Below are positions 9,201 to 62,308 of a DNA stretch of 64,000 bases, piece by piece (the stretch's first letter is position 1; every line of letters begins with the position of its first letter). Made by a program: the position numbers and the translations under genes. Source of the stretch: Lepidodermella squamata (Eukaryota > Animalia > Gastrotricha); NCBI GenBank assembly GCA_047495785.1, contig JBLDXI010000003.1, positions 2,914,001 to 2,978,000 on the forward strand. The letters run 5' to 3'. The notes beneath the pieces are model-generated. The model saw only the letters and a program-made list of their open reading frames with translations. It was not told the DNA's origin and did not search any database.

Positions 9201-11920
9201 GACCTTTGCACCCTGAAATGATGTTGACACTATGGCAGGATCGTAAGCTTCCGATCTTTATTATTTATCTATGACCGTTAACATGGTGTTTGGCTAAATT
9301 CTTGTCACCGTGTAATTTTGATGCCAATTAAAATTCAATTAACGAGGAGTCAAACGATCTCAAAAATACGGTGATATTCATCGGGGTTGCAGAGAAAATG
9401 GGCTTCAAAGTTTACCGTTGATAATTGCAAATTACGAAAAATTCGCCCTTAAAAAAGTAGTTTTTTAATTAATAACCCTTCTCACAATAAATTCTCATGT
9501 TATTTTCTTATCATAGACAAATAATAAGAGACTGGACACTCACGCTTATTAAATACTGCCGAAATCAAAAAATTAGTTTTTTATCCGCACACTAACTTTG
9601 TGTTTTAATTGAGTTTTAACGATGCAGAGATAAGGTTTCACGATCTAGTGCAACTTTTCACGCTCTATTTAACCATATAAATTTGGAAGCTGTATCATGA
9701 AAAGTTCCTCAAAAATCAGGGCTTTAAAAAATTTGAGAGCCTGCCTCGCAATTTGACCCATCTCGTATTCCAGAAAGGTACTAATGGGATCGATGCAGAA
9801 TTTTGTGAGCTTTCTTTTGATACCAAAATCATGAGGTGCGTACTCATGATAGAGATAGGAGTAACGAAATATTTAAAAGGCTATTTTTTTATTGCGCGTT
9901 TTGATATGTGCGCCGCCGCGACAAGTGAAAACCGTGATTCACGAACGATTTGGGTTCACGTCATGGTCTACTACAGTAGTTCACGCTGATTTCAAATCTG
10001 AAACCCGTTTTTCAATATCTGTTACCGTTCTCAAGATCTAAGCACAATTGAGTATTCGCACATCACAAATGAAATTGTTCAGGAGAAGCAAAAAACAAAA
10101 TCATAGATTTGCGAAAATATTTCCTTTAGGTATAGCGAATTGCAACACCTCATTCAGCGGTTTTTATGACCTACTAGGGCAATTTGAGTCCTAGATTCCG
10201 AAATTTGCACTATTAAGAGCCCAATTTCCACCGATCTAGCTCAAATTGGATTAAAAAACCACTTAATCAAATTTGCTTTTTCGTTTTTATTAAACTGTGA
10301 AAGCCCAGGTAAATACGCACCTCATGATTTTGGTATCAAAAGAAAGCTCATAAAATTCTGCATCGATCTCATTAGTACCATTCTGGAATACGACATGGGG
10401 CAAATTGCAAGGCAGGCTCTCAAATTTTTTAAAGCCCTGATTTTTGAGGAACTTTTCATGATACAGCTTCAAAATTTATATGGTTGAATAGAGCGTGAGC
10501 TACTGCCGTTTATGGCCACGGCTCGTCCACAGCCGATGAAAACTGTCGTTGCAACGCCAGGATACAGTGAGGGCTGAAATTCGTAAATTTCCTTAAAAAT
10601 GTGGTTAAGGAGGAATTTTAAAATGTAAATTTGAATAATTTCGGCAGTATTGTAAAGGCAAGATGAGTGTCCAGTCTCTTATTATTTGTCTATGTTTCTT
10701 ATATTCGTAGTCGGAATTTTTGGGGTTATCTGAGGTTAGGAATTGAGCTATAGTTATCGAAACCCAACTAGTGCCTCTGCGTCAACCTAAATCGATAAGC
10801 TTTTAGGGCAACACTTTGGCGTTTCCCTCCTGGAGGTCTGAAATTCGAAAATCAAGATCCTCAGCAATCGCCCCTTTTCAACTGAACACACAATTTTAGA
10901 TTTGCTGGAAAATACAGAAAATTCGCCAAACCCCATGTTTCACTTGTTAACGGTTTATAATGACTTTTCTCTCAGGAATTCGTGAGATGTGTACATTGAA
11001 ATGACGCAGTGGCAATGTCCCAACTGCTAAGCAGCGAGCGATCGCAGTTATTGAACGTTAACGGAAAATACTGGGACAACGAAGAAACTGCAATTCATGC
11101 TGCAGCAAAAAGAGGCAATGTTGACATAATTAAACTTCTGGTACGCAGGTTCAATGCCAACGTCAACGCAGCTGGCTTAGATGGTTCGACGCCATTGCAC
11201 GAAGCCGCCTTTTATGTCAAACCTGAAATCGTGGAATTGTTGGCGGGCGAGTTCAAAGCCAACGTGAATGCGGCAGATAGCATCGAAAGAACGCCATTGC
11301 ACGATGCCGTTTCGAGTAGCAAAGCCGACGTTGTGAAACAGCTGGCGCGTGAGTTCAAGGCCGACGTTATTAAGAGTAAATCGAATGGCATCGGGACATT
11401 GCACTCGGCCGCTTTGAGTGGAGAGGTCAAAGTCGTGGAACTGCTGGCTGGCAACGGAGCCAACGTCAATGCGGCTGATAAGTATGGCCTCACGCCACTG
11501 CACTTAGCCATCCCGTATGGCAAGGCTGAAGTCGTGGAACTTCTGGTGGAAAGGTTCAAAGCCGACGTCAACGCGGTGTCACAATATGGCGAGACACCAT
11601 TGCACAGGGCCGCCCAATGTGGAAAAGCTGACATCGTGGACCTGCTAGCGGGCAAGTTTGGAGCCAAGGTCGATGCGACGGATGGTGATGGCAATACTCC
11701 ACTGATGATAGCGGCGTATTGGTCACAAGCTGCTGTTGTCCAGCTTCTTGTCAACAAATTCAAGGCTGATGTTGATACAAAGAACAAGAACCGCCAAACT
11801 GCGCTGGATTTGGCTAAAAACACTCGTGCTGTATCGAATCAAAGCTCCGGTGAACAAGGGCAAATAATCCGAATCCTCTCAGATGTTGTTGCTGTGGAAA
11901 ATCACTTCGGACGAGAATGA
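6286..11920 (+). CDS. NEK/NIMA-like Ser/Thr kinase followed by ankyrin repeats (exons 6286-6498, 6551-6611, 6665-6947, 7004-7148, 7213-7259, 8511-8676, 10976-11920); in-frame TGA at 10997-10999
   Basis: Spliced frame gives GNGGFG, FAIKE, LRHPNIV, MEYCDGGDL, HRDIKPVN, DFGLAK, YAAPE, DVWSFG, RP..DQVLNHRFL. The last exon is in phase with ~7-8 ankyrin repeats (TPLH.A....), but codon 8 of that exon is TGA. Confidence 0.75.
7452..7542 (+). repeat. Degenerate (CCCTAA/CCTAAC)-like microsatellite in kinase intron
   Basis: cctgaacctaaccttcaccctgaaccctatccaaaccccaaaactaaccctaaccctgacttctaaccctaactcc. Confidence 0.5.
9512..10694. mobile_element. Non-autonomous DNA transposon with 8-bp TSD (P- or hAT-type), in kinase-ankyrin intron
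   Basis: 31-bp TIR CATAGACAAATAATAAGAGACTGGACACTCA at both ends; TSD TTTCTTAT (9504-9511, 10695-10702); internal ~185-bp inverted repeat 9658-9842 / 10313-10498. Confidence 0.85.
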
Positions 11921-14023: not shown

Positions 14024-16145
14024 ATGCGCTTAAATTATATAAACTTCATCGCTCTGCTAATTGCCGTTTCAGGTTTTATTTGATGGCTATATCAAAATTG
14101 ATTTTTTCCAATGATTTTTTCAGGCTTAGCCCGAGCGGATGATTTCCAAAGCGAGCATAACCAGGTGTTTGGAATTCAGCATCAATTCGACGATAACGGC
14201 TACCAGCACGAAGTTTCGCGCATGGTCGACCACTTTGCCGACTCGATCCCGGGCCAAGTTCATGCGCGATGCGACGCCAGCCTCCAACGCGAAGCTCATA
14301 CACACCAGACGGCGCCTATTCATCACGCCAACAACAACGATTGGTCGGCTCATCACGATATGAACACCGAAAAGAAGGTATCGTAAACTGAAGTGTACCG
14401 CCAATTCTTATTTCGTTCACCATTTTAAAGATCTCATATTTTTTATTAAAATAAAAATTTTCAATTTCGCAAATTTAATTTTTAAAATTTTAAAATTTTC
14501 CAAATTTCCAAATTTAATTTAATTTTTTAATTTTGAAAATTAACATTTTGAACTTATACAAATTATATACAATTATATAAAAATTTCAAATATTTTTAAA
14601 CAATTAAAATGGGTTGGAATTAATGGGTTAAAATTGGTTAAAATTAAAAAAATGGCTCAAAATTTTAAAATTAAAATTAAAAAATGGCTCAAATTATTTG
14701 CATCACAAAAATGTAGGTTCTCGGAATCCATTTTTTATTTTGGACCAAATAATTAATTTGAATGATTTTTTCAGCAAGTTAGCCGATCTGCTGCTATGGC
14801 GCCGAAGAAACCTGCCGCGCCGAAGAAACCGAAGCAAGAAAAACCGAAACGTCAGCGCGGTAGCATGTCGATGTCTTTCTCTAAATCAGGCGAAAAAATC
14901 GAGAAAAAGCCGGTCGAGAAGAAGCGCCACGCGAAACGTCACATCAAATCGGCGATGAGCAAATCGATGGAGAAGCCGCCGGTTCACAAGAATAAGAAAA
15001 AGCAGCCAGTGGCTGCTAAGAAGCGAAACTACTCCAAGTCGAAATCAGCCTCGCTGCAGCTGCCGAAGAAGATGAGCAAGAAAATGAAGAAGCTCATCCC
15101 GAAATTCCCGAGCTTTTCCATGTCGATGATGAAGTTCGATTCCAAGTCGCGCGAGGAGAAGAAGCCGGCGAAGAAAGCGGCGAAAAAGCCGGCGAAGAAA
15201 CACCAGCGCAGCTACTCCATGTCGCAATCGAAATCGGAAGATAAAATGCGCAAGCACTCGAAAAAGGCGAAAAATCCGAAGAAAAACCGGCCGGCGAAAA
15301 AGGTTCGAAGCCTTTCGGTCTCAATTTCGTACTCTGAAGATCGTAAGGCGAAAAAGCCGAAAACCAACAAGAAGCGCCGAGTCTCGAAATCCGAGGTCAA
15401 GAAGCCGAAATCGAAGAAAAACGCCAAGTCGAAATCACTCGAACGCCCGAAACGCCATGAAAAGAAGTCGGAATCTCGAGACAAAAAGCGGCGCCATCAT
15501 CGCGGTAAGAAGAACAAGCGCCGAAGCTACTCCGAGGCTGGTAATTCCGAGCCGCGGAAACGCAAGGGTTCGAAAAGCTCGCCGGAAATGAAGAAGAAAT
15601 CGCGAAAATCGACTTCGAAATCGGCCCCGAAAACGACTACGGCGAAACCAGTCCCGAAACCGGCTACTACGACCACAACCGCTGCCCCGAAAGTGCCGAA
15701 GAAGACCCGCGGCTCAGTTTCGATTTCGGTCTCTTTCTCCAAGGAGAAGAACAACAAGAAGCCGCGAAATGATAAGAAGAAGCCGAAGAAGAACAACCGT
15801 GGGAAAATTTCGATGAGTGTCTCGTACAGCAAGTCGTCGGAATCGAAGCCATGCGATAAGCCGACCACAGTCCGAGTTGTCCCGACTACTACAACTCCCG
15901 TTCCTACTACGACTACTACAACCCGAAAGCTGCCTGTAACCGAAAAGTGCGACGCCTCTAAATCGAAGTCGAAGTCTTACTCGAAGTCTGAGATGCCGCG
16001 GAAAAATCGGAAAAATTCGATCAAGAAGGGTGGCAAGAAGGGCGGTAAGAAGCACCGCCGTTCGATGAAGAGCAGCAGTGGCGGCTCGTCGGCTGGTAAA
16101 GACCGTCGCCGTCGCGACAAGCGCCACCGCACTCGTAAAGATTGA
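14024..16145 (+). CDS. Family E: secreted Lys/Ser-rich protein with His/Asp-rich N-domain, multiple (SX)n blocks and Thr/Pro stretches (557 aa; exons 14024-14072, 14124-14377, 14775-16145)
   Basis: Signal exon MRLNYINFIALLIAVS + phase-1 intron; exon 2 GLARADDFQSEHNQ...TEKK; phase-0 intron to TTTTCAG; exon 3 QVSRSAA joins in frame with ORF 14796-16145. Confidence 0.82.
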
Positions 16146-31268: not shown

Positions 31269-32032
31269 ATGAGAATCATCCTTGCCGTGGCTGTTTTTGC
31301 TCTGTTGCAAATCGGTAACAAATTTTTTTAAATTTTTTTAAATTATTTTAAATTTATCGTTTTCAAGCTCTGACGTCAGCTGGCCGAGGCGGCGGGCGTC
31401 TGCCTGATTTCAACCGAAGTGGTTTCATGAAGATGGGCAGCGATTCGGACTTTTCCGCGTATAACGACAATCGCATGAAAAAGCACCGTCGCCAGCCCGG
31501 CCACGCCGACCGCCACCACCGCCGTCACCAGAAGCCGAAGAAGCCGGCCGCCAGCAGCGGCTCAAAGCCCAAGCCGACGACGACTCAGAAACCGAAAAAG
31601 CCCGAAACTGTCGAGAAGCGGCCGCGTCGCCACCACGCGAAACCCCGCCGCCACGAACCCCGCCGTCACCAGCGCGACCCCCGCAAGCTCAAGTACCGCA
31701 CGTCGTCGGGCGATGCCATCACTGTTTCGTCCATGTCACACGACTCGTCGTCGCCTCGCCGTCGTTATCATCGCAAGCCGGTCTACGTCAAGTACTGCAG
31801 CGATTCGGCTAGCAGCCAGATGAAGTCGACTGCCCATCCAGCCGCTGGCGGCTCGACGACTGCCCATCCAGCGACTGGCGGCGCGACGACTGGCCACCCC
31901 GCCACTGGCGCCCCCGGTACCACTGGCCAGCCGACGACGACCCGCGCCCCTGTTGCCGCTACTACAACTGCTGCTGGCAACGTCAAGGTGCTGCAGGTTG
32001 AAAACGGTCTGAAGTTCGCGTTCAATATTTAA
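31269..32032 (+). CDS. Family D copy 2 (236 aa; exons 31269-31314, 31368-32032)
   Basis: Signal exon MRIILAVAVFALLQI; R/H/K/P-rich, YVKYCSDS, TTAHPATGG repeats, C-terminal GNVKVLQVENGLKFAFNI. Confidence 0.87.
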
Positions 32033-37272: not shown

Positions 37273-40200
37273 TGTCAGGACCACGCGACCCTGTAGTATC
37301 GGCGGTCGAGAAGTTTCCAGAAACTTCCGCGTTCTCGAACCTGCCAGAACCCAGCAAGTTCTCGAACCTTCCAGAAACTTCCGATTCTAGAACATTCCAT
37401 TGTAATATATAAACCCTTGTTTCGCTTATGTTATTTTAATTGTAATATTAACTGTTTCTTTGCTAATAAACGGCAATACTTAGCTTACAGCTTCTGTGTT
37501 TTGCTTCCGCTCTTACACGATATTACAATTCACCCGTAACTGGCTAGCTACCTATTGCCATCCGATTCCGATTCACGTCTGCAATGGAAGCTACCGAACT
37601 CCATGCCCAGTTGGCCGATCTTCAAGGCCAGAACTATGCGATTAACCAGCGACTCAACGCCTTCACCGACCAAATCGCACAACTCTGCACCGCTGTCAAC
37701 GCCTTGCGAGCTGTTGCACCCTCGGTTCAACCCGTTGCTTCGGATCCCGTTGCCCAAGTCCCGGTTACTACGACTCAGCCGAATGCTTTACGGGCGAAGA
37801 TACCTGGTCGGTATGCCGGCGATCGGTCTAAGTTCCGAGCCTTTGTCACGCAATGCCAGATCTACCTACGACTGAATGCAGCCTACTACCCCGATGATTC
37901 TGCAAAGGTCGCGTTCATCTGCACTCTGCTGGACGACTCTGCCCGAGATTGGATGACGCCCTTTGCCGAGACGAACCACGCCATTATGAGCGATTTTGCG
38001 GCGTTCCTGGCAAGTTTCAAGGCGGCCTTCGACGATCCTAATCGCACACGAACAGCCGAGTTAGCGCTTCAACGGCTCAAACAAGGCAACCGCTCAGTTG
38101 CAGTTTACGCTGCCGAGTTTCAGCGCCTGGCTGTCGACACCACCTGGAACGACTCCGCGCTCGCTCACCAGTTCCGGTTCGGTCTATCCGACGAAATCAA
38201 AGATGAGCTGGCCCGTGTTGATTACCCGTCCAACCTGCAAGATCTGATCAACCTGTCGAACAAAATTGACGCCAGGCTCACAGAGCGTAGGTTGGAGAGG
38301 AAGCATCAAGCGATTTTTCCAAGGTCCACGGTGGTTCCTCCCACGATCACCGCTCCTGCCTCATTGCCGCAAGCAGCAACACAGCCGGAGCCAGAGCCAA
38401 TGCAGGTCGACGTTGTTCGCAAACCGTTGACGCAAGCGGAACGAGAATACCGACGCAAGAACGGCCTCTGCATGTACTGCGGTCAACCTGGCCATGTTAT
38501 TCGTACCTGCCCGACACGACCTACCACAGCTCGTGTTAGGAAAATTAACAATATCCAACATGATGTACCTATTGCTGATGATGAAATAAATAATGAAGAA
38601 TCGTACTCGCGCTCCTCTCTTTTTCTGTTGAGGTCTGTTGTCAACGTCCCAAAGGATGACCTTGCTGTCATGGCAATAGCTATGGTCGACTGCGGCGCGG
38701 ACGGCAACTTCATGGACATCCAGTTCGCCAAGGAGCACGACATCCCGCTGATCGAAAAGAAGAAACCAATCCCTGTTGGTGGAATAGATGGCCGATCGCT
38801 CAAATCTGGTCCGATAACTCATCAAACTGCTCCCTTACAGTTCGAAATCTATGGCCACATCGAGACTATTGTATTCGAGCTCATCGATAGTCCTCACTAC
38901 CCAGTCATCCTCGGTATTCCCTGGTTGGAGCTTCACGACCCAACGATCCGATGGTCGGGTAGAACAATCATGTTCAACGCTGCGCATTGCAAGAAGCATT
39001 GCAACGCTGAATTCCAGCATCATTTCGTTGCGGCTGTGAGTCAAGCTACAGCTGCGCCTGTAGACCCGCTCCAAGGTCTACCTTCAAAATACCATGAGTT
39101 TGCTGATGTCTTCAGCGAAAAAGAAGCTGACAAACTACCCCCACATCGGCCATACGATTGTCCGATCGATCTCGAACCTGGAACAATGCCACCATTCGGC
39201 CCGATCTACAGTTTATCAGAAGTTGAGCTGGAAGCATTGAAGAAATACATTTCCGAGAACCTGGAGAAAGGCTTCATCCGTTCATCAAAGTCCTCTGCGG
39301 GATCTCCCATCCTTTTCGTTAAGAAAAAAGACGGCACCCTTCGGCTATGTGTCGACTATCGTGGCCTGAACAAAATCACAAAACGAAACCGGTATCCATT
39401 GCCTTTGATTCCGGAACTCCTGGACCGTTTGCGACATGCTAAGATCTTTACTAAGCTGGACCTCCGCGGCGCTTACAATTTACTCCGGATTAAGGAGGGC
39501 GATGAATGGAAAACCGCGTTCCGTACCAGGTATGGCCTTTTCGAGTACCTGGTTATGCCTTTTGGGTTGACCAATGCCCCGGCGGCGTTCCAGTATTTCA
39601 TGAACGACATATTCCGCGACATGCTGGACATTTGCGTGGTTATCTACCTCGATGATATCCTCATTTTCAGCGAAGATCCCAGCAAACACGAGGAACATGT
39701 CAGAGAAGTGCTTCGACGGCTGAGAGAAAATCGCCTATTCTCCAAACTGTCGAAGTGCGAGTTCGATGTCAAGAAGGTCGAATTTCTCGGATTTCACATT
39801 TCCACGGAAGGCATTGCCATGGACGAGAAGAAAGTGGCCTGTATCCGCGACTGGAAACGTCCAACATCCGTGAAAGACATCCAATGCTTCATGGGCTTTG
39901 CAAACTTCTATCGACGCTTCGTCGCGAATTTTGCCAAAATTGCGCACCCAATCAATCGTCTCCTGAAGAAAAATGCACCTTTTCACTGGGATGACAGCGC
40001 CGAACAAGCTTTCAAAACCCTGAAAGAGAAGTTCACTTCAGCTCCCGTTCTGATTCATCCAGACCCCGATTTGCCGTTCATTGTCGAGACCGACTGTTCA
40101 AATTTCGCACTTGGATGCATTCTCTCTCAAGTCCACTCCGATGGCCGTTTGCACCCTTGTGCTTACTACTCGCGAAGTCTGTCCGACGCCGAGCGGAACT

Positions 40201-42278
40201 ACGATATCCACGACAAGGAACTTTTGGCGGTCAAAGTGGCTTTCGAAGAATGGCGACATTACCTCGAAGGTGCTCGCCACAAAATAACGGTTTACTGCGA
40301 CCACAAAAACCTGGAATACTTCATGAGCCAAAGGAAGATTCTCAGTCAGAGGCAAGCTCGATGGGCGAACTTTTTCTCGCGATTCGATTTCGTTCTTACG
40401 TACCGCCCTGGTAGCAAAGGGGGAAAACCGGACGCCTTGTCCAGAAGACCCGAGTACCGCGGAACTGACAAAAATGACGATCCCGAAGCCTCGAGCGTGC
40501 TAACCCCTGCCCATTTCCAACTGATGGCACTCAAATCGTTTTCGTGGTCTTGCCAATTTTCGGAAGACATCAAGTCAGCTTTGGCCTCCGATTCCTTTGC
40601 AAAGTCCGTTCTTGAATCCTTAAACGGCGAACACTGCGACCCGAAGTATGAACACTTTTCCGAGCAAAACGGCTTGCTGTTGTTCAAGAACTTGATCTAC
40701 GTCCCTGAAAGTCTGCGGCTGAAAGTGTTACAGCTCCGTCATGACGCCAAGGTTGCAGGGCATTTCGGTTTCCGGAAAACTTTGGAGCTTGTCTCTCGCG
40801 ATTATTGGTGGCCGAAGCAACGCCAGTTTGTCTACGAGTTCGTCAAGACTTGCGATACCTGTAAGCGAGCCAAGGCGCCAAGACACCTGCCGTATGGCAA
40901 TCTCGAACCGTTACCAACCCCGGATCGACCATGGTCCTCCATTTCGATGGATTTCATCACCGAGCTTCCTCAATCAAACGGAAATACAGTGATTCTGAAT
41001 GTAGTCGATCGGCTAACGAAAATGGCCCATTTCATTTCGCTTCCCAAACTACCATCAGCAGAAGAAACAGCTTCAGTGTTTCTCAAGGACATTTTCCGAT
41101 TACACGGCGTACCAGATTCGACCGTGACAGACCGCGGCTCGCAATTCGCCTCAAAATTCTGGAAACGATTTTTTGAGCTTCTAGGAACCGATGTCAAACT
41201 CTCAACTGCAAATCACCCGGAAACAGACGGCCAGACGGAGCGTGTCAACCAGGTGCTGGAGCAATACCTTCGTTGTTTCACGAGCTACCAACAAGACGAT
41301 TGGGCCGATCTGCTCCCCATCGCTGAATTCTGCTACAATAATTCGCTGCACGCTTCGACGAACTGCACTCCTTTCCTTGCCAACTATGGTTTCCAGCCCA
41401 AATTCGACCCGTTGACACCAAATTCCAGTGAAGTTCCTCGCGCCGAAACTCGCATCAAGGACCTTTCGGAACTGAAAAACGCCCTCATGACCGAACTGGA
41501 AGCCGCAAAAGAAACGTACAAGAAATACGCCGACCTCAAGCGGCAACCAGGTCCAACTTTTTCCGAAGGCGACCTTGTTTGGCTATCAGCCAAGCATGTT
41601 TCGACGAACCGACCAAGCAAAAAACTTGATTTCAAGCGTCTTGGGCCGTTCAAAGTCGTCGAGAAGATCAGTGAGCTGGTTTACCGACTTCAACTGCCTC
41701 CCAGTCTGAAAATCCATCCGGTGTTTCACATCTCCATGCTAGAGCCATACGTCGAAAACACGATTCCCGGTCGAAAACAACCGCCGCCACCACCAGTCGA
41801 ATCCGAAGAAGGCGACGAATTCGAAGTTGAAGCCATACTCGACTCGAAGGTGGAACGTGGCACCTTGAAGTACCTGGTTGATTGGAAGGGTTATGGCCCA
41901 GAAGAACGAAGTTGGGAGCCGGTTTCAAACCTGAACTGTCCAGACCTGTTGGCCGAGTTCCACGCCAAGTACCCTGACAAACCGAAAGGCACGAATGCGA
42001 CGTCTGGAAGCCGTCGGCTACGACGGGGGGTGATGTCAGGACCACGCGACCCTGTAGTATCGGCGGTCGAGAAGTTTCCAGAAACTTCCGCGTTCTCGAA
42101 CCTGCCAGAACCCAGCAAGTTCTCGAACCTTCCAGAAACTTCCGATTCTAGAACATTCCATTGTAATATATAAACCCTTGTTTCGCTTATGTTATTTTAA
42201 TTGTAATATTAACTGTTTCTTTGCTAATAAACGGCAATACTTAGCTTACAGCTTCTGTGTTTTGCTTCCGCTCTTACA
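37273..42278 (+). mobile_element. Full-length Ty3/gypsy chromovirus (Tf1/sushi-like) LTR retrotransposon
   Basis: 245-bp TG..CA LTRs at 37273-37517 and 42034-42278 that read identical by eye; 5-bp TSD GAGCG; G-rich PPT before the 3' LTR; single uninterrupted ORF. Confidence 0.97.
37584..42173 (+). CDS. gag-pol: Gag-Pol polyprotein (capsid, CCHC knuckle, aspartic protease, RT, RNase H, integrase, chromodomain), 1529 aa
   Basis: CMYCGQPGHVIRTC; MVDCGA; YLDD; ETDCS/DKELLA RNase H; HD..GH..CDTC zinc finger and D,D35E core; GPF; FEVEAILDS..KYLVDWKGYGPEERSWEP chromodomain. Confidence 0.97.
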   Translation: MEATELHAQLADLQGQNYAINQRLNAFTDQIAQLCTAVNALRAVAPSVQPVASDPVAQVPVTTTQPNALRAKIPGRYAGDRSKFRAFVTQCQIYLRLNAAYYPDDSAKVAFICTLLDDSARDWMTPFAETNHAIMSDFAAFLASFKAAFDDPNRTRTAELALQRLKQGNRSVAVYAAEFQRLAVDTTWNDSALAHQFRFGLSDEIKDELARVDYPSNLQDLINLSNKIDARLTERRLERKHQAIFPRSTVVPPTITAPASLPQAATQPEPEPMQVDVVRKPLTQAEREYRRKNGLCMYCGQPGHVIRTCPTRPTTARVRKINNIQHDVPIADDEINNEESYSRSSLFLLRSVVNVPKDDLAVMAIAMVDCGADGNFMDIQFAKEHDIPLIEKKKPIPVGGIDGRSLKSGPITHQTAPLQFEIYGHIETIVFELIDSPHYPVILGIPWLELHDPTIRWSGRTIMFNAAHCKKHCNAEFQHHFVAAVSQATAAPVDPLQGLPSKYHEFADVFSEKEADKLPPHRPYDCPIDLEPGTMPPFGPIYSLSEVELEALKKYISENLEKGFIRSSKSSAGSPILFVKKKDGTLRLCVDYRGLNKITKRNRYPLPLIPELLDRLRHAKIFTKLDLRGAYNLLRIKEGDEWKTAFRTRYGLFEYLVMPFGLTNAPAAFQYFMNDIFRDMLDICVVIYLDDILIFSEDPSKHEEHVREVLRRLRENRLFSKLSKCEFDVKKVEFLGFHISTEGIAMDEKKVACIRDWKRPTSVKDIQCFMGFANFYRRFVANFAKIAHPINRLLKKNAPFHWDDSAEQAFKTLKEKFTSAPVLIHPDPDLPFIVETDCSNFALGCILSQVHSDGRLHPCAYYSRSLSDAERNYDIHDKELLAVKVAFEEWRHYLEGARHKITVYCDHKNLEYFMSQRKILSQRQARWANFFSRFDFVLTYRPGSKGGKPDALSRRPEYRGTDKNDDPEASSVLTPAHFQLMALKSFSWSCQFSEDIKSALASDSFAKSVLESLNGEHCDPKYEHFSEQNGLLLFKNLIYVPESLRLKVLQLRHDAKVAGHFGFRKTLELVSRDYWWPKQRQFVYEFVKTCDTCKRAKAPRHLPYGNLEPLPTPDRPWSSISMDFITELPQSNGNTVILNVVDRLTKMAHFISLPKLPSAEETASVFLKDIFRLHGVPDSTVTDRGSQFASKFWKRFFELLGTDVKLSTANHPETDGQTERVNQVLEQYLRCFTSYQQDDWADLLPIAEFCYNNSLHASTNCTPFLANYGFQPKFDPLTPNSSEVPRAETRIKDLSELKNALMTELEAAKETYKKYADLKRQPGPTFSEGDLVWLSAKHVSTNRPSKKLDFKRLGPFKVVEKISELVYRLQLPPSLKIHPVFHISMLEPYVENTIPGRKQPPPPPVESEEGDEFEVEAILDSKVERGTLKYLVDWKGYGPEERSWEPVSNLNCPDLLAEFHAKYPDKPKGTNATSGSRRLRRGVMSGPRDPVVSAVEKFPETSAFSNLPEPSKFSNLPETSDSRTFHCNI

Positions 42279-42615: not shown

Positions 42616-43125
42616 ATGTACTTGGCTTTTGCGATTTTCGGCCTGATGTTTTGCCTGATGCCATCGACGCAATCAGCCCCAGTGAATAATCTTCTGCCGT
42701 GCATTCAGCAAAACTGGGTTCAATGTGGGATCGCCCTGGGCTCAGCATTTTTCAAACTTCACCAGTGGTCAGATGGAGTGGCGTACAAGGTCGCATCTTA
42801 CGATTGTACTGCTCGGTACACAGGCAGAATCAGCACGTATCAAAAAGTCTGGGATGGGGAGTTCACCTGTCCGAGTCTTTGGCCGGGTCATTCCGGCAAT
42901 TCACAAGGATACACCAGCCAGACTGGAGCAATCGAACCCGCCATGCAAGATTTTTTCAAGAATCTTACGGCTGCGAATGTTCTGACCCAGGAACAGTGGG
43001 ACCAAATAGCACCTGGGGTTGTTAGACCTGCTACCACGGCTGCTCCTAAGAACGCTATCACCCGTGCAACTTTCAAATTGCCGAAAGAAGACGTTACACC
43101 TCGAAAAGGAGCCTTCATACCATGA
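42616..43125 (+). CDS. ALF: ALF-like secreted protein, copy 3 (169 aa, intronless)
   Basis: Signal peptide; CIQQNWVQC; C-TARYTGRISTYQKVWDGEFT-C-PSLW; TATATAAA at ~42544. Confidence 0.8.
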   Translation: MYLAFAIFGLMFCLMPSTQSAPVNNLLPCIQQNWVQCGIALGSAFFKLHQWSDGVAYKVASYDCTARYTGRISTYQKVWDGEFTCPSLWPGHSGNSQGYTSQTGAIEPAMQDFFKNLTAANVLTQEQWDQIAPGVVRPATTAAPKNAITRATFKLPKEDVTPRKGAFIP

Positions 43126-43335: not shown

Positions 43336-43835
43336 CTAGTTGGAGACGCTGACGGACTTGCTGACGGAGTACGAGCCCTTGTTGGCCTTGCGGCCGCCGA
43401 ACTTGCCGTGGCCGAACTTGCCGCCCTTGCGGCCGTAGCCGAAGTTCTTGCCGTGCTTGCCGAACTTGCGACCACCGAATCGCTTGTTCTTGCCGAAGCG
43501 GTTGCCGGAGAAGGAGGCGGACCGCGAGTAGGAAACAGACTTGGAGACCGACTTGGAGAAGGATCCGCGGCGCTTGTTTATCTTCTTGCCGTAGCGCTTC
43601 TTCATCGGGAAGGCACGTCCCTTGCGGAAAGCCCTCTTGTTCTCGAAGGAGCGGCTCGCCGAGGTGCTCACCTTTTTCTCGTAGTGCCGGTGCATCTCCT
43701 TCGACTCGACATTCCACACCTTGGCCTCGGAGTAAGCTGAAATAATAGAGCATGAAAAGGTGGCAAAAATGATCCGGAAAAGGGATTACCAAGTCCGAGC
43801 AGGACGACAACAGCAATAGCAAGGAAAGCACGCAT
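43336..43835 (-). CDS. Family A secreted cationic protein, copy 6 (148 aa; exons 43835-43790, 43736-43336)
   Basis: Same structure; ends SYSVSKSVSVSN like family A'. Confidence 0.9.
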
Positions 43836-44420
43836 TGTTGACTGAGAATGAGATGAAGATTAATTATTGATTATCAAATCGAAAAGCGAGAGATGGTTGA
43901 TGATTTTGAACAAAAATCTCGCCGCTTTTATACCATGCCACTCTGTCTTAATTGGGGTAGCTTGAATAATTCATTACGTGCTAATTAGCTGTGATTTTAT
44001 GGCGCAAATGGCATTCTATACAATGAGCGAACTATTTTCTCTGTCGATAATTAGAATTTCAATAGCTGAACTTCGAAATTAAATTTTACTTGATTAAATT
44101 ATATTTTGAAAAAAACACCAAAAAATCAGAAACAAAAAAATCAAAAGCATTTCTGAATACCGCGTAAGCCGTTCAGCAGCATGGATCGCGTGTGCATGAT
44201 TTAGTGCCGAATCTTGCTGTTTTCAGTGCCGAATTCAATCAACACGTTGCTCTTTCAACTTCAGGGAATAGATGATGAAAATACATACAGGGGGTTAATG
44301 ATAAACTAAACATTTTTATTACATTGAATCCCAAAAACATTATCCGAGATACCACACATTATTTTTCAACTATTCAAAATAAATTTCATCACATCAAAGT
44401 CTCTTGTAATCGAACCAGGT

Positions 44421-45676
44421 TTAGTAGGCGTAAGCGTCATTTCCGTAAGCCGCTTCATGGTTTACAATGCCGTGCGATTTGTCGCCTTTCTTGCCATCCT
44501 TCTTTCCAGTTTCTTTACCGCCCTTCTTGCCTTCCTTCTTGCCGGTCTTCTTTTCGGTCTTCTTGCCACCCTTCTTGGCAGCCTTCTTGGGGGCGCTGTC
44601 CTTCTTGGCGCTGGCTTCCTTATAGCTGGCAGAGATACCTGCATGGAAGTCGTGGGTGGCGCGTTCAGCCGAGGCATTGGCGCGTTTGCGGCCGTGCTTG
44701 GCTGAGGCCTTGCGGGTGTGGGCAGAGTCGGAGACGGAGGTCTTCTTGTTGCTGGCCTTGCGGGCCTTGCTGGTACTTGCGGGCGTTGCGGGAGTCACGG
44801 GCGACGGAGGCCGAGGCGCGGCGGTGGTGGGCTTTGTTGCGCTTCGCCTTCTTCGAGGCAGCGGCGGCCGAGGCAACGGAATCGCGAGAGGCGTAGTCGG
44901 CAGAGTGGGCCTTGCGCGACTTCTTGCCGTGGGCCTTCTTGGCGGTCTTCTTGCGGCTGGCAGTGGTGGCAGCGCCGTCAGAGTCGAAGGCAGCAAAGTC
45001 GTTGGCGCCCGATTCGAAGCTGAACTTGTTGACGTTGTTGTGGCCCTTGTCGGTGAAGGTCTTCTTCTTGAACTCGATCACCTCGCCGGCCTTGTCGCGG
45101 GCCTGGTCCTTGTGGAAAGCAGTCTTGCGCTTGTGGTCGGCACGGCCGTGCTTCTTGTTGCGCTTGTGCTTCTGGGCAGCGGCGGCGGCGCCAGAGTCGG
45201 CGTAGGCGTTGTCGTGCTTGGCGGAGGCAGCCTTGGCGCCTTCGCGGTGTTTGCGGCCGTGGCGCTTGCTGCCAGCCTTGGACTTCTTGCGGTCGTAGGC
45301 GGAGTCGCGCTTGCCAGCCGAGGCGTAGCTGGCTGAGGCGCGTTCGGCGCTGGCCGATCGGGTCTTGATCAGTTTGCGCTTGTCGCTAGTCTTCTTGTTG
45401 TGGGAAGCGTCGGCCTCGGCGTATTCGGCGGCACCGAATTCTTGCTCTGCAGAGGCGGACTGGCGGGCGTAGGAGTCGTGTTGGTCGACTGAGGCGGAGA
45501 AGTCGGCCTTCTTGGAGCCACCTTTCTTCGCACCTTTTCCTTTGCCATAGTCACCACCGGCAGAGACTGGATTCAAAAAGTCACAAATTGAACAACAAGT
45601 TTAAAACATAGGATGGTAGGAAATTACCGGTAGCAGCAAGCAGGATAATCACAGCAAGAGCGAGGTAGACACGCAT
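44421..45676 (-). pseudogene. Family B copy 2 with a frameshift at ~44772 (exons 45676-45628, 45566-44421)
   Basis: Collinear with 1922-3294 until ...NARKY. The frame then shifts (AAG TAC C AGC AAG GCC), and the homologous C-terminus (...KKGGKK...AYAY) continues in another frame. Confidence 0.7.
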
Positions 45677-45858
45677 TTTATAATGGCTAATTCTAGTAAT
45701 TTGAGAAAAAAAATTGAAAAAATTGATCACAGTTGTGACATTAGTATTATACGTCCACCTTTGAACAGGAAATTATTTCAATCAAAAAAAGTGGTTCTTC
45801 ACCCTATACAATACTAGAACAGTCCTATTTTGGTAATAAAGCTCATGATGCCAGCTTC

Positions 45859-46895
45859 TTAGTTGTTGCCAGCTGACGCAGATGCAGAATTCTTGTTAAC
45901 CGAAGCCGAGGCGAATTCACCACGACGATCACCATGACGGCGGCCGAAGAAGTTGCCGTGACCACGACGGCCGCGGAGGTTGCCAGCGGCAGCCGAGGCA
46001 GAGCGCTTGTTAACCGAGGCAGAGGCGAAGTTTCCTCCACGACGACGGCCATGCAGACCGCGGCGGCCATGACGGCGACCAGCGAACGAAACGGAACGGC
46101 GACCGTGCTTGAATCCACGACGCTTGCCGAACGAGCCAGCCGAAGCGGAGGCAGAGTTCTTGTTGACGGAGGCTGAGGCGAAGTTGCCGCCGCGACGACC
46201 ACCATGGCGACCGAAGTAGCCGCGACGACCACGGAAATTGCCAGCGGCAGCAGAAGCAGAGCGCTTGTTGACGGAGGCAGAAGCAAAGTTGCCACCACGA
46301 CGACCCCCGTGACGACGGCCGAAGAACTTGCCATGATGACCACGGCGGCCACGGAAGTTGCCGGCAGCGGCCGAAGCGGAGCGCTTGTTAACCGAGGCAG
46401 AGGCGAAGTTTCCTCCACGGCGGCGACCGTGGCTGAAGTGGCGACCAGCGTGGCGACGGCCGAACTTCTTGAAGCCCTTGCGGCCCTTGTTGCTGCCAGC
46501 TGAGGCCGAGGCGGAGTTCTTGTTGACTGAAGCCGAGGCGAAGTTGCCACTGCGACGACCCTTGTGGCCGAAGAAGCGACCATGGCGACGACCGCTACGA
46601 TTGCCAGCTGAAGCGGAAGCAGAGTGCTTGTTAACCGAGGCAGAGGCGAAGTTACCACGACGGCGACCATTGAAGCCGAATCCACGGCCGTGTTTGCGAC
46701 CGATCAGATTGCCACGTTGAGCCTTGTCGACGCCAGCAGAAGCAGAGGCTTCCTTCTTGTTGACCGAGGCTGAAGCATCATTTGCTGAAGTGGCAACTAT
46801 GGACAGAAATATGTAGAATTATGTCTTTCTTTTAGTAAAAGTCATTTACCGATGCAGAATAGAGCGACAGCTGCCGCGACAAGGGTTAGACGCAT
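45859..46895 (-). CDS. Family C: secreted silk-like block copolymer, 8 x ASASVNKxSASA blocks separated by Gly/Arg/His/Phe segments (327 aa; exons 46895-46850, 46796-45859); correct frame absent from the ORF track
   Basis: Signal exon MRLTLVAAAVALFCI, 53-nt phase-1 intron; hand translation VATSANDASASVNKKEASASAG...GNFASASVNKHSASASAG...GEFASASVNKNSASASAGNN-stop with no internal stop; total 984 nt. Confidence 0.88.
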
Positions 46896-47761
46896 TGTTG
46901 GTTTCTAAAAAAATAGTATCGAACAGATAATCTGAAAATAAAGGGCAAAGCAAGTTGGAATGATATTTTTCCCATTTTGAAACCACTTTTTATAGCATGG
47001 CCGGTCGGGTTTTCATCTACCTGTTGCGTGGCCTGTTGCGATCGATCGCGTGTTCGACCTAATTATAGGTCAAACGGTTGCACCAATGTCGCGAGCGAAA
47101 ACCATTATTCTTTTAGAGACGCCCGTGCGGGTTCATTTTTTCATCTTCCAGTCTTAAAATAGATTGAAACGAATACGCAACGGACGAGACAATCCTAGAG
47201 TTTTACAATCATTTCATTGAAGTTGATATATCTGAAGAGTCCAGTCGCAACAGTCGCAGGAAACCAGTTTCTCCTCGTTCAACGTTGAATATATCGTGGG
47301 CCTTTTTCCGTGGCGAAATATCGAAAGTCGACAGCTTTTCGTATCGCAACTAGCAGCGGTAGCCGAGTAGCTATAACAGTTTCGAAGTTTTGATAGTAAA
47401 TATCAGATCAAAAAATAGAAAATCACTGCTAGATTTCGCGTTTTAGATTCTGAGCATTTATAACAATTACACATTCGGCGTTTTTCCAACTAAAAGCGAC
47501 CACTAGGATCACCTTCAGACATCAAATTTTCCTTTTACCGCAAGATTAGGAATTTTTTAACGCTGGAAACTGTTTTCGCCCTGCCAAATTATTCATCGAT
47601 TCTGCAGCCCGAATTACCGACCGCGCCTAATATTCGAAAACTTCCCTTGAGGCAAGAGTAACACAACGTTGGACCAATCGCATTTTATTCAGCAAAAGGC
47701 GAATACAATATTCGACTATAATTCAGATTATAAGTTATAATTTAGCATTTCGATGTTGCCT

Positions 47762-48261
47762 TTAGTTGGAGACGCTGACTGACTTGCTGAAGGAGTACGA
47801 GCCCTTGTTGGCTTTGCGACCGCCGAACTTGCCGTGGCCGAACTTGCCGCCCTTGCGGCCGTAGCCGAAGTTCTTGCCGTGCTTGCCGAACTTGCGACCA
47901 CCGAATCGCTTGTTCTTGCCCCAGCGGTTGCCGGAGAACGAGGCGGACCGCGAGTAGGAAACAGACTTGGAGACCGACTTGGAGAAGGACCCGCGGCGCT
48001 TGTTCATCTTCTTGCCGTGGCGCTTCTTCATCGGGAAGGCACGTCCCTTGCGGAAAGCCCTCTTGTTCTCGAAGGAGCGGCTCGCCGAGGTGCTCACCTT
48101 CTTCTCGTAGTGCCGGTGCATTTCCTTCGACTCGACGTTCCACACCTTGGCCTCGGAGTAAGCTGTAATTATACAACATTGAAAGACGGCGAAAATGATT
48201 TGAGAACAAGATTACCAAGTCCGAGCAGGACGACAACAGCAATAGCGAGGAAAGCACGCAT
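47762..48261 (-). CDS. Family A secreted cationic protein, copy 7 (148 aa; exons 48261-48216, 48162-47762)
   Basis: Same structure, 53-nt intron. Confidence 0.9.
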
Positions 48262-54520: not shown

Positions 54521-55283
54521 TTACATGGTGAACGCGACCTTCAGATCGTTTTCAACCTGCAGCGTCTTGACGTTACCAGCGGCTGTTGTAGCAGCAGCAA
54601 CAGGGGCGCGGGTCGTCGTCGGCTGAGCGGGGGCGCCAGTGGCAGGGGCGCCGGTGGCCGGGCGGGCAGTCGTCGCGCCGCCAGTCGCTGGATGACCAGT
54701 AGTAGTCGACTTCATCTGGCCGCTGGCAGAATCGCTGCAGTACTTGACGAAGACCGGCTTGCGATAACGCGGGTAGTAGCGACGGCGAGGCGACGACGAG
54801 TCATTCGACATGGACGAAACAGTGATGGCATCGCCCGACGACGTGCGGTACTTGAGCTTGCGGGGGTCGCGCTGGTGACGGCGGGGTTCGTGGCGGCGGG
54901 GTTTCGCGTGGTGGCGACGCGGCCGCTTTTCGACAGTTTCGGGCTTTTTCGGTTTCTGGGTGGTGGTCGGCTTGGGGCGGGCTGGCGCGGAGCCGCTGCT
55001 GGCTGCCGGCTTCTTCGGCTTCTGGTGGCGGCGGTGGTGGCGGTCGGCGTGGCCGGGGTGGCGACGGTGCTTTTTCATGCGATTGTCGTTGTACGCGGAA
55101 AAGTCCGAATCGCTGCCCATCTTCATGAAACCACTTCGGTTGAAATCAGGCAGACGCCCGCCGCCTCGGCCAGCTGACGTCAGAGCTTGAAAACAATCAA
55201 TTTAAAATAATTCAAAAAAATTGAAAAATTTTGTTACCGATTTGCATCAGAGCAAAAACAGCCACGGCAAGGATGATTCTCAT
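54521..55283 (-). CDS. Family D copy 3 (236 aa; exons 55283-55238, 55185-54521), inverted duplicate of copy 2
   Basis: Near-identical to 31269-32032 including upstream and 3' flanks. Confidence 0.87.
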
Positions 55284-56932: not shown

Positions 56933-58237
56933 ATGAAGTCGCATCTTGCCGAGCTGAAGACTTCGGCGGCATTTAATCAAATTTTTGGTCACAGCTATGC
57001 TTTCACATACTCGTCGGGAGTGGTAATTTTTTTTAATTTTTAACCAAGTTTCGAAAAATTTCTCGAAATTTTGAACAGGCGATTTCTACATTTATGATGC
57101 TTTCATCTTTCCTAACCTACATCGGCGTGTATTTCGGCACCGAAGTGATTAACATGCCTTTCACAGCGGACATTTACGCATTTTCAAAGCTGTATAAAAT
57201 GGGAAATTTATCAGCTATGGATGTCAACAATCACATTCAAGTGGCTTCTATTGTTGTTTATATCGGCTCGGCGATTTTCATGGGTTTTCTCGCTATTTTC
57301 GGTGTTTTAACCCTGGTTTGCTTGTCAAACCGCGAAAACCACATACAACGGCATAATTCGATTGTAAGTTGCCTAAATTATCGATTTTAATATTTTGAGG
57401 GCTAATATTGGACTTTTTCTAGTGTGTGGCTATGCTGTTACTTGGAATTTCAACTCACGTAGCTGTTTTTGTCTGGTCGAGAGGTGAACTACGACAGGTA
57501 AAATTAAAATAAAAAATTAATTTAATTTAACGAATAAATTCGAGAAGAATCGATTTATAATTTTATAATTTTTTTAGGTTCAAAATAGGTTGAAAATTTA
57601 AAAATGGAAAATTTAATTTTTTTTCAATTTTTTCTCTAAAATGCCCAATTTTATTAGGTCATTTTTGCTGATTGAAAATTATGATTTTATTTTTTTTTCA
57701 TTTTAGATGAAAGACGGTCGAATTGATTCAGCTTTGATGCACATTCAAGATGGAATTTTAGTTGACACCGATCACGTGCCACCGGTATTAAATGAACCTG
57801 GCAATGCCTTCACGCTTATTCAACGCCAATTTAATTGCTGCGGCGTTGTGTCACCCTATGAATGGAGCATCACGGTCGATTGGTTTCGAACAAGCTACGG
57901 CCGTCTGAACCCATGGCATGGAATATCGATATTCCCATGCGATTACCGCCCGCCTAATACCACGTGCATTCAACAAGACGGAACAAGCGCTCAGGCCGCG
58001 CTTGACTGCACCCTCGATGACCCGATGACCCTGCGTGGCTGCGGCTATACCATCGAGCGGCGCGTTGTCGACTACATCGTTCGACTGATGCGAATTTCAG
58101 TTTTCTGCATAATTTTTCAAGCATTTGAACTGCTGTGGATTCTATGCATTTGTTACAGCTTCAAAGTCCCACTATTCACGGCGAGGCGGGTGAAACATCA
58201 TAAAACAATCAGCCTCATAAACGTGCCTCAAATTTGA
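56933..58237 (+). CDS. Divergent tetraspanin-like protein 1 (exons 56933-57022, 57079-57363, 57423-57497, 57707-58237)
   Basis: Four hydrophobic segments; IQRQFNCCG..P.EW, IFPC and GC before TM4; phase-0 splices in frame. Confidence 0.78.
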
Positions 58238-58946: not shown

Positions 58947-60996
58947 ATGTTACTGATGCCGAAAAATAGTTTGACGATGAACCGGTTGTTTATCAACACA
59001 TACGCCTTCACTTATTCGTCGTCTTTGGTAAGTCTCCAATTTTTTTTCTAAAATAAGCTAATTGGCACAAAATTTGAGACTTCGCTTCGACACCTTTCTA
59101 AGAACAAAAAATTAGGGACATTTAGGAGAAAGCCTTAAGGAGAAAGCCTTAACGGAAAATGGTGATAATGAATTTGAATTCCAGGGTGAATTGACAAACT
59201 ATTGTTATGGAATTAGGTCATTCCTTCAAAAATGACCTAATTTCTTCGAAAATGATCCAAAATAGCCAATATATTTTTCGTTTTTCTATTACTACCTCAT
59301 ATATTGTAAGGACTCTAAGAAAACTCAAATAAAATTGTATTTTTCAGATTTTTGTAAATTTAGCGCTAAAGTAACCTCTCAAGGTTAAGGCTTCACGCGA
59401 AATTGGGTGCTGGAACCTCAATTTTGATGAAGCATAAAAAACCGTTTAAAAAGTTGAAATAATTCTATGATGGGCTATTTTTTCAATATAAATTTGTTTG
59501 ATAGAAGGAATGTAAAAATCCTATATTTTCATCCGCTACGGTTAAAAAGATATTCCCATTTTTTTAGTCACGTGACCTTAACTGAAGTCACACCTGATTG
59601 ATTACCTCATGAACCGTGATAGCTAGGAAGCCGCTCTCAAAGAGAACTTTCATCAACGGGATGAGAAATACCAGGATAAACATTTAGATTGGCTCACAAA
59701 CACTCGTTCCCTACGATTTACACACCTGGAAGTTGTAGTCACCCTACAGAACTATTTCATACGGAGATAGTGAAAAAGCTGCCATCGAACTTGAATTTTA
59801 TAATTTTTTGTTGCAAAAGGCCATCTCAGTTGCGATGTTGCTGCTGGCCGGTGTTACCCTCATTGGCGTTCGAACCGGTGTTAAAATGATCGACACGCCG
59901 TACACGGCTGATATTCACGTGATGGCCGGGCTTTACCACGCAACAGCTAGCCGTAGTGAAATCTCAATAAAACTGCTCATCGTCTACCTGGCTTACGTCT
60001 TCGAAGCCGGAATCATCGCCAGCCTCTCGCTTATCGGCTTCTCTCGACTGTTCTGCTGCAGAAAAAACGCAAATAAAAACCCAATCCGGTACCACAACTC
60101 GGTCTACCTCGCTCTTGTGATAATAGGCGTCATGACCCACGTCGCTGTCCTTACCTGGTCTAAGACTGAAACTTACCAGCTCCAATCCGGCCGGCTGGAA
60201 CAATCGTTGATACAGCTTCAAAATCGCATTGAAACTACCCCGGACGGTCGTAATCTCAATTTTGAAGGTCAATTATTCCACGAAATTCAGCGCCAATTCG
60301 ACTGCTGCGGTGTTATTCTGCCATACGAATGGCAGGACGAAGTCACGTGGTTTAGGGTCAAATATGCCAATGTAACGAAAGGAAACCCGATTTTCCCTTG
60401 CATATCGTCCGAACAGCGCGAGGGCTGGCCTACGCGCAATTTATTTTCGGCACCTTGTCGCGATGAGGCGCCGACTGCTGATTGCACCCTTGAGGCGCCC
60501 AGGTCACTGAATGGGTGCGCCGATATGACCCAACAGCGCGGCATCGATTACCTATGCCGTCTATCCCGACTATGCGTCTTTTGCATTGCCCTACAGGTAA
60601 TTTGTCGAAAAATATTTAAAAAATCAAATTGAAAAAAAATTAAATTTTAAATTTCAACATTTTAAATTTAAGTTTTTTTTGTAATTTTTTTAAATTCAAC
60701 CAATTTAATTTTGTTATAAAATTTCTTTAATTTCAAATAATTAATTTAATAATTAATTTAATTTATTTATTTTCAAATTTTAGACTTTCGAATTTATTTG
60801 GCTGATGTGCCTCTGCCGCGCTTACAACATTTCGCTGCTGATGGGATCTATGCAGGTGATTTGTATCGAGGAAGAGGCGGATGATATCAATGCCGGTAAC
60901 AATAAGGCAGCAGAAATGCGCGACGCTTCCAGCATGACAACGTCTCTGAACGAAACTACGAGCGACAAAGCGGCCATTGTTCATTTTGCTGCATAG
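58947..60996 (+). CDS. Divergent tetraspanin-like protein 2 (exons 58947-59027, 59820-60596, 60784-60996)
   Basis: Paralog of the previous gene (YAFTYSS, P(F/Y)TADI, RYHNS, THVAV.xWS, IQRQFDCCG, DCTL..P..L.GC). Confidence 0.8.
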
Positions 60997-61511: not shown

Positions 61512-62308
61512 ATGCGCGCTTGTCTCGCTATCGCCGCTCTCGCCCTCATTTGCATCGGTAAGAAATTGGGTCAAGTAATGACCCAATGACCCAATGAGTA
61601 ATGAAAAAAGGTCAACCTTTTTATTCCCCATCAGCGTATGCCGATGCGACGGTTAACAAGTTCGAGTCGAAGGAGCTGAACCGCCGCTACTCGAAGAAGA
61701 CCAGCCTCTCGGTTAGCCGATCGTACGAAAACAACGCAGGTTTCGCCAAGAAGGGTGGCTACGCCCCGAAGAAGCGCCACGGTGGCAAGAAGTTCGGCCG
61801 CAAGATGAACAAGCGCCGCGGATCCTTCTCCAAGTCGGTGTCCAAGTCTGTTTCCTACTCGCGGTCCGTCTCGTTCTCCGGCAACCGCAAGAACAAGCGA
61901 TTCGGTGGTCGCAAGTTCGGCAAGCACGGCAAGAACAAGTCGGTCTCCAAGTCTGTCTCCTTCTCCAGGTCCGCCTCGTTCTCGGGTGCTCGTCATGGCA
62001 AGCGCAACAACCGATTCGGTGCTCGCCGTTACGGCAAGAACCACGGCAAGAAGGGCGGCAAGTGGGGCCACAACTTCGGCAACAACTACGGCCACAATTT
62101 CCGCAACAAATGGGGCCACAAGTTCGGAAACAAGTACGGTCACAACTTCGGAAACGAATACGGGCACAATTTTGGAAATCAGTACGGCCACAATTTCGGA
62201 AACAAGTATGGCCATAATTTCGGCAACAAGTGGGGCCACAATTTCGGCGGTCACAAGGCCAACAAGGGCTCGTACTCCGTCAGCAAGTCGGTCAGCGTCT
62301 CCAACTAA
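61512..62308 (+). CDS. Family A' copy 2 (239 aa; exons 61512-61557, 61635-62308)
   Basis: Signal exon MRACLAIAALALICI; 8 GH-started octapeptide repeats; paralog of 17338-18131. Confidence 0.88.

Follow-up and report, generated by a model that had tools for sequence, protein, structure and literature searches.

The window analysed here, a 64,000-nucleotide stretch of Lepidodermella squamata DNA, carries on its minus strand a two-exon gene for a 327-residue precursor, which we read and translated from the window letters. The gene belongs to a family that is lineage-specific and orphan, and within which purifying selection is strongest on an 18-residue Ser/Ala module. Judging from its sequence, there is a somewhat better than even chance that the product is a mass-produced secreted matrix protein, a block copolymer whose amphipathic Ser/Ala units would be ordered and whose cationic linkers would be disordered.

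Exon 1 (46895-46850, minus strand, 46 nt) starts with the ATG at 46895-46893, holds 15 hydrophobic signal codons and ends one base into the next codon (phase 1). It is followed by a 53-nt GT..AG intron (46849-46797) and by exon 2 (46796-45859), which carries the remainder of the signal peptide, eight modules with their linkers and the stop codon TAA at 45861-45859. Translated from 46794, exon 2 stays open for 311 codons without a stop. Since the hydrophobic 15-residue stretch encoded by exon 1 runs into the small residues T-S-A, we infer that the N-terminus is a cleaved signal peptide and that the protein is exported. The predicted mature protein has a mass of about 32 kDa and a net charge of about +68, as computed on the joined exons. 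In composition, exon 2 is dominated by small and basic residues (G57, R53, A48, S44, N28, F24, K19, H16); it has no Cys and only five acidic residues (D+E), which agrees with the description of a mature protein free of Cys and almost free of acid in the initial annotation.

Several frames are open over the repeat, on both strands, and the list of open reading frames lacks the proposed one because exon 2 has no start codon in that frame; a 280-aa frame on the same strand is listed instead. One could hold on these grounds that the proposed frame is a non-functional by-product of a GC-rich tandem repeat, or that the true frame is the 280-aa one or one on the plus strand, a reading to which we give practically no chance. 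The seven core modules differ from one another by 151 codon changes, 124 synonymous and 27 non-synonymous, and the differences among the seven canonical copies of this gene fall on codon positions 1, 2 and 3 in the numbers 24, 12 and 140. This excess of synonymous and third-position changes points to protein-level selection in exactly the proposed frame, and the synonymous divergence means that the module copies are more than mere recent duplicates. The same excess is seen between paralogue pairs and among read variants: 11 of the 16 best-supported contig variants in exon 2 are synonymous in the proposed frame, and the remaining five lead to residues that paralogues also carry. Together with a signal exon and phase-1 intron kept in all 24 paralogue models, and with the spliced contig and exon-only coverage described below, these data effectively refute a non-functional gene. 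The hidden spliced gene had been placed correctly, in coordinates and in strand.

We placed public contigs of four runs on positions 44300-47100 (2,801 nt) at a likeness of at least 88%. Run X1, which is probably DNA of the source, contained 61% of the sampled words and covered every bin. Runs X2 and X3 covered only the exon bins of the target and of its downstream neighbour, leaving the bins between the genes, the intron and the region upstream with no or almost no depth. One X2 contig joins 46795 to 46850, which is the predicted splice off by one unaligned base, and a spliced transcript in the proposed frame is thereby matched to within that base; X2 carries another organism label, and the RNA nature of the runs is a guess. 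These are whole-animal contigs, thousands of which come from paralogues, and depths sum over them, so that depth shows that the family is transcribed and not how strongly the window copy is; for the window copy itself, expression is indicated by one spliced contig from a differently labelled run.

The precursor contains eight modules, all on the minus strand. Seven of them fit ASASVNK-x-SASA-[S/A]-AG exactly and the first is a variant, in line with the eight units initially reported. Module 1 (46732-46779) reads DASASVNKKEASASAG and occupies residues 6-21 of the exon-2 translation. Module 2 (46603-46656) reads GNF-ASASVNK-H-SASASAG. Position x is N in modules 3 (46495-46548) and 6 (46135-46188), and R in modules 4 (46360-46413), 5 (46240-46293) and 7 (45982-46035), all three of which continue as SASAAAG. 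Module 8 (45868-45921), again with x = N, is a GEF variant in which E replaces N before F, and it is followed by NN and the stop codon. Each canonical module is thus preceded by G-N/E-F.

The seven canonical modules are separated by six linkers, each of 20-36 residues and made mostly of G, R, F, H, K and N; across the family, G accounts for 29% and R for 28% of the linker residues. Among 63 unique linkers, we counted 169 runs of two or more K/R residues, against 95 ± 6 in residue shuffles, and G precedes 88% and follows 69% of these dibasic runs where 43% would be expected on each side. The presence of G on both sides indicates that the linker motif is G-RR-G, interspersed with F and H. RR(R)G stands before every canonical module, and a dibasic site follows within about six residues, at varying distance and in varying context. 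The linkers come in a few recurring types that are tied to the module variant. The initial annotation had described variable G/R/H/F spacers; they are indeed cationic and varied, but they are not freely variable, as both the recurring types and dN/dS values of 0.14-0.36 show.

To define the family, we queried the window's own 121-Mb assembly with the exon-2 protein and found 46 matching stretches without a single internal stop, mostly on contig C3 between 2.47 and 3.62 Mb, with a few on C1 and C12. They represent at least 24 family genes, and 24 two-exon models were built. All 24 have a 46-nt signal exon of the pattern MR..LVAA.VALFC[I/V], a phase-1 GT..AG intron and one repeat exon, so that the hydrophobic signal exon first noticed in the window copy is a family-wide feature. 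The intron is 50-63 nt long in 23 of the models and was modelled with 154 nt in the remaining one (L020); intron sequences diverge between paralogues, whereas the exons are kept. Two subfamilies can be told apart: a long one with up to 11 modules, and a short one whose three modules are accompanied by a G/Y/R/F/H tail with ..NGWFWH at its end. Net charge ranges from +34 to +91 across the family, and the mature part is Cys-free in 22 of the 24 models.

We counted residues in 105 modules from 21 distinct proteins, found with a search pattern that allows several residues per position and yet limits what could be counted. Along the first half of the module the counts are G 100, N 90, F/Y 85, A 96, S 104, A 103, S 105, V 104 and N 95, and along the second half K 91, x (R 50, N 45), S 104, A 105, S 105, A 105, S/A (70/30), A 104 and G 104. 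A single residue thus accounts for at least 90% of the modules at 14 of the 18 positions, the exceptions being N (86%), F/Y, x and S/A. Selection on the two parts of the protein was compared by dN/dS. Five of six long-subfamily pairs, with a dS of 0.24-0.64, give 0.035-0.10 for the modules and 0.18-0.36 for the rest of the protein; the sixth pair is an outlier owing to misalignment of the repeats. In the short subfamily, where the modules offer only 32 codons, module dN/dS scatters widely, and it is 0.14-0.32 outside the modules. These values imply that both parts are constrained, the module far more than the rest of the protein.

All homology searches and structure predictions used exon 2 (45862-46794, minus strand). 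With this query, Pfam-A gave no family at E values up to 1, a word-indexed search of 5.8 billion proteins gave no match, and phmmer gave none among 1.84 billion representatives. A feature-based search of the ESM Atlas yielded no usable match, and PDB sequences yielded only chance matches to the TPR repeats of OGT (E 0.14). Four heptapeptide strings of the module had no occurrence in a full-text literature search, and nothing relevant was found in the literature on gastrotrich cuticle, scale, eggshell or adhesive proteins or on tissue atlases. We call the family orphan in the sense that these sequence searches, whose sensitivity is lowered by low-complexity filtering and whose libraries may lack records of this genome or of its near relatives, detect no relative outside the lineage.

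The family promoters share a simple layout. In the target, a TATA box (TATAAAA, 46988-46994, minus strand) lies 99 nt upstream of the ATG, and of 22 distinct paralogue promoters, 21 have a TATA-like box between -79 and -99. The target also has two copies of a CGCAACA box (47040-47034 and 47028-47022, minus strand), which lie about 30-45 nt further upstream than its TATA box. In the family, the relaxed pattern C[GAT][CT]AACA is found between -103 and -145 from the ATG in 15 of the 22 promoters, compared with 2.8% of random 86-nt windows, and sits 25-45 nt upstream of the TATA box; a stricter pattern matched 8 of 22. The box often reads TTGC[GA]CAACA, which resembles a C/EBP-type bZIP half-palindrome.

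The window is crowded with further genes for secreted, polycationic, low-complexity proteins, built with a 46-nt signal exon like that of the target. Directly downstream lies a K/A-rich polycationic gene (44421-45676, minus strand, ATG at 45676) with a 46-nt signal exon and a phase-1 intron, and the target and this gene have been duplicated together at at least eight loci. The reading frame of the K/A-rich gene changes near 44761-44790, where it has about 13 extra bases relative to intact paralogues at two other loci (L002 and L006), and public contigs also break off at 44760; the window copy is likely a pseudogene, an allele or an assembly error. A second copy of the K/A-rich family (1922-3190, minus strand) has a 422-aa open frame with a net charge of +64 and stands without an adjacent Ser/Ala-module gene. 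The target is flanked by a duplicated pair (43336-43834 and 47762-48145, both minus strand) whose product has a charge of +33 and combines SKSVSKSVS stripes with GK/F repeats. In the 43834 copy a TATA box stands at -98, the signal exon is again 46 nt long and the intron is in phase 1; an ORF at 61601-62308 (plus strand) is related to the pair. An ORF with an (SX)nE pattern at 14796-16145 (plus strand) is strongly cationic (+129), with 119 K and 71 S among 449 residues. Dividing net charge by the number of Ser gives 1.2-1.8 in the target (68/44) and in six polycationic ORFs from unrelated families of the window (129/71, 33/22, 40/33, 64/53 and 50/32 among the values). This is near the charge of phosphoserine, which is a hint of charge compensation and not a test, and may be coincidence.

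Other genes of the window are of different kinds. An intronless 169-aa ORF with its own signal peptide (42616-43125, plus strand) matches Pfam PF11630, the anti-lipopolysaccharide factor (ALF)/scygonadin family, at E 2.9e-7 and 31 bits (cut-off 25); the genome holds six copies of this gene, all on C3 at 2.86-3.29 Mb, inside the region of secreted genes, and a search for contigs on record that encode the ORF, in a library that may lack this genome, gave none. An intact 1,529-aa ORF at 37584-42173 (plus strand) belongs to a Ty3/gypsy-type LTR retroelement, in which a CCHC knuckle, a protease, a reverse transcriptase (YLDD), an integrase and a chromodomain-like C-terminal end can be recognised by eye. 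Two inverted, near-identical 201-aa ORFs (31427-32032, plus strand; 54521-55126, minus strand) are basic (+30) and Pro/Thr/Arg/His-rich, with no Pfam match. There are also an ankyrin-repeat ORF (11009-11920, plus strand; Ank_2, E 4e-56) and two tetraspanin-like ORFs (57707-58237 and 59808-60632, plus strand; E about 1e-7 to 1e-8).

To examine the fold of the module, we ran AlphaFold2 on the two subfamilies with separate alignments. For the long subfamily (10-sequence alignment) the model has a mean pLDDT of 38 and a pTM of 0.41, and DSSP resolves all eight modules into two strands joined by a three-residue turn at N-K-x; in the seven canonical modules each strand is six residues long, and everything else is coil. 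The short-subfamily model (mean pLDDT 42) has the same strand-turn-strand arrangement at all three modules, with pLDDT of 50-60 in the modules and 27-36 in the tail. Over both models the turn spans 2-3 residues. Module pLDDT is 38-60 overall, and such models of repeats can be artefacts. The proposal that each module forms a hairpin turning at NK is therefore matched at every module in two alignments, but at this low pLDDT the models argue for it weakly. Within the module, the residues alternate so that one strand face would carry A/A/V or A/A/A and the opposite face (F)/S/S or S/S/S. This strict apolar/Ser alternation around N-K-x would allow the module to form an amphipathic two-stranded beta unit. 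Cross-beta stacking as in lacewing silk, phase separation driven by cation-pi contacts and a textbook silk design, all put forward in the initial annotation, would be further, hypothetical properties of the protein.

We then propose a model for the function of the family. Each module would present an Ala face (A, A, V or A, A, A) and a Ser face on two strands around the N-K-x turn, while the G-RR-G, F and H linkers would remain disordered and hold on to polyanions by charge or to aromatic partners by cation-pi interaction. Having so many paralogues under TATA promoters would allow mass production of one extracellular material, in which the protein may act as a physically cross-linked block copolymer; a cuticle or scale layer, an egg coat and a glue are candidate materials. 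Several points speak against this matrix reading. Ala and Ser alone are not strong beta formers, and both AlphaFold2 models are of low confidence (mean pLDDT 38 and 42). Many G-RR sites resemble convertase and amidation signals. In addition, molecules with a charge of +68 cannot associate with one another in fresh water unless they are modified or have a polyanionic partner, and we found no polyanionic partner for the target within the 64-kb window. The (SX)nE ORF at 14796-16145 was considered as a polyanionic coacervation partner and rejected, since it is itself +129 unless heavily phosphorylated. It is tempting to speculate that phosphorylation of the Ser stripes would supply an internal anion, but the modules are without an S-x-E priming site. 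A broader version of the model, which we regard as possible though doubtful, is that the family and the other polycationic Ser-stripe genes of the region are the basis of the gastrotrich cuticular scales, egg coat or duo-gland glue; the Ser/Ala hairpins would serve as cross-links, and the Ser faces may be phosphorylated to give a self-neutralising polyampholyte.

One alternative is that the protein is a polyprotein precursor, cut by a convertase at RR/KR, trimmed by a carboxypeptidase and amidated at Gly, which would release Ser/Ala peptides of about 20 residues or short cationic peptides with a neuropeptide-like or antimicrobial role. A signal peptide followed by repeated conserved units is what such a precursor would show, and the dibasic runs, at nearly twice the frequency in shuffled linkers and with Gly before 88% of them, would provide its processing sites, as would RR(R)G before every module with a dibasic site within about six residues after it. 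The G/Y/R tail of the short subfamily recalls nematode glycine-rich peptides, and the ALF-like gene nearby is of an immune type. However, half of the otherwise invariant modules contain K-R where the rest have K-N or K-H (x is R in 50 and N in 45 of the 105 modules, and K precedes x in 91), so that a protease cleaving at dibasic sites would cut inside every second conserved unit, on average, and leave the others whole. Gly also follows 69% of the dibasic runs, which makes the motif G-RR-G and not an amidation signal alone. In prohormones the unit is free of internal cleavage sites and the spacers are poorly conserved, whereas here the unit contains such sites and purifying selection has kept the linkers as entire types, unlike junk spacers. 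The would-be peptide C-termini differ between units (NFR, SNK, NRS, SF, NG), the cationic part would fall into pieces of 2-9 residues, and at least 24 TATA-driven paralogues would be unusual for a neuropeptide. We consider the peptide-precursor reading less likely than a matrix protein, and improbable in its own right.

The extreme charge and the absence of Cys would suit a soluble or surface-coating polycation that does not assemble in an ordered way, that is, a disordered, protamine-like coat that binds polyanions and whose Ser/Ala modules are sites of glycosylation or phosphorylation. This reading is unlikely in our view, if less so than the precursor. Its targets would be microbial surfaces, mucus glycans or nucleic acids, and such a coat might protect eggs or the body surface or condense a secretion, roles that we likewise rate as unlikely. 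The AlphaFold2 confidence is low throughout, ALF-like genes and other polycations lie in the neighbourhood, and the Ser-rich modules could be sites of modification. Against it stands the conservation of the module: near-invariance at 14 of 18 positions, including Ala, Val, Asn and Lys, exceeds what modification sites or spacers need, most pairs of the long subfamily give the module a dN/dS of about 0.04-0.1, and apolar and Ser residues alternate as strictly as in an amphipathic strand.

To our knowledge, no material made by a gastrotrich has yet been described in molecular terms. The family described here looks abundant, is orphan and has a sharply defined design, with an 18-residue amphipathic Ser/Ala unit kept near letter-perfect over 105 copies and Arg/Gly/Phe/His linkers between. 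New here are the family-wide gene models, the codon-level selection, the linker statistics, the two structure predictions and an explicit test of the precursor reading. If the target is a material protein, it would offer biomaterials research a short expressible sequence (32 kDa, no Cys) that joins a silk-like beta module to a coacervate-type polycation, and zoologists would gain molecular markers with which to recognise a secretory cell type of gastrotrichs. Were the protein processed to peptides, these would constitute a very large new peptide family. Should the polyampholyte reading be true, the principle of caddisfly silk and sandcastle glue would have been invented independently in gastrotrichs.

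By analogy of design, the target resembles caddisfly fibroin, barnacle cp19k and suckerin, and none of them is homologous to it. It shares with silk-type block copolymers a secretion signal (cleavage inferred) and the alternation of a regular small-residue module with a Gly-rich linker. It departs from fibroins and spidroins in size and termini, for it has only 327 residues, starts its first module right after the signal, ends in a module plus NN and contains no Pfam domain. Where a fibroin is the product of one giant gland gene, the target is a 32-kDa protein without non-repetitive terminal domains and one of at least 24 dispersed paralogues. Caddisfly H-fibroin has Cys-bearing terminal domains and an L-fibroin partner, and the target is without both. 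In caddisfly H-fibroin, (SX)nE regions are reported together with G-rich spacers (PMC13267644), and the (SX)n regions of the silk are reported to form phosphoserine beta domains (PMC4929942; PMC13267644). Both H-fibroin and the target are blocky, secreted and Arg-rich proteins of freshwater animals, in which alternating Ser is followed by G-rich spacers. Nevertheless, phmmer and the word search found no sequence homology between them (0 matches and none, respectively), none of the seven canonical modules of the target ends in the Glu of (SX)nE, and the 32-kDa target comes from a 1-kb gene present in at least 24 copies, whereas the caddisfly protein comes from a single gene of more than 20 kb.

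Barnacle cp19k consists of alternating blocks rich in S/T/G/A and in charged residues. Like the target, it is a small secreted protein with few or no Cys, and a cp19k protein is reported to self-assemble into amyloid fibres in vitro (PMC10410215). The two are not homologous; the charged blocks of the target are purely cationic and based on Arg, Gly, Phe and His, and its small-residue module is an almost invariant 18-mer, whereas that of cp19k is a compositional bias. The egg-stalk silk of lacewings (MalXB1/2) is rich in S, A and G and has been proposed to fold back into short beta strands. The target shares this richness and the proposed back-folding, but the lacewing silk is a continuous 16-residue repeat with terminal Cys and without long cationic linkers. 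Nematode NLP/CNC glycine-rich peptides and the precursors of insect polypeptide AMPs have in common with the target a signal peptide, tandem units, Gly-dibasic sites and clustered paralogues; unlike in these precursors, the unit of the target is neutral, made of small residues and in half of the cases interrupted by an internal dibasic site, and the basic spacers are conserved. In suckerins, the proteins of squid sucker ring teeth, beta modules rich in Ala, Ser, Thr and His alternate with Gly-rich amorphous modules, and the proteins form a multigene family. Suckerins and, as proposed, the target are modular block copolymers, and both come from multigene families of small to mid-sized secreted proteins. 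They are not homologous, and the Gly-rich modules of suckerins are rich in Tyr and Leu and nearly uncharged, with Pro flanking the beta modules, whereas the linkers of the target are about 28% Arg.
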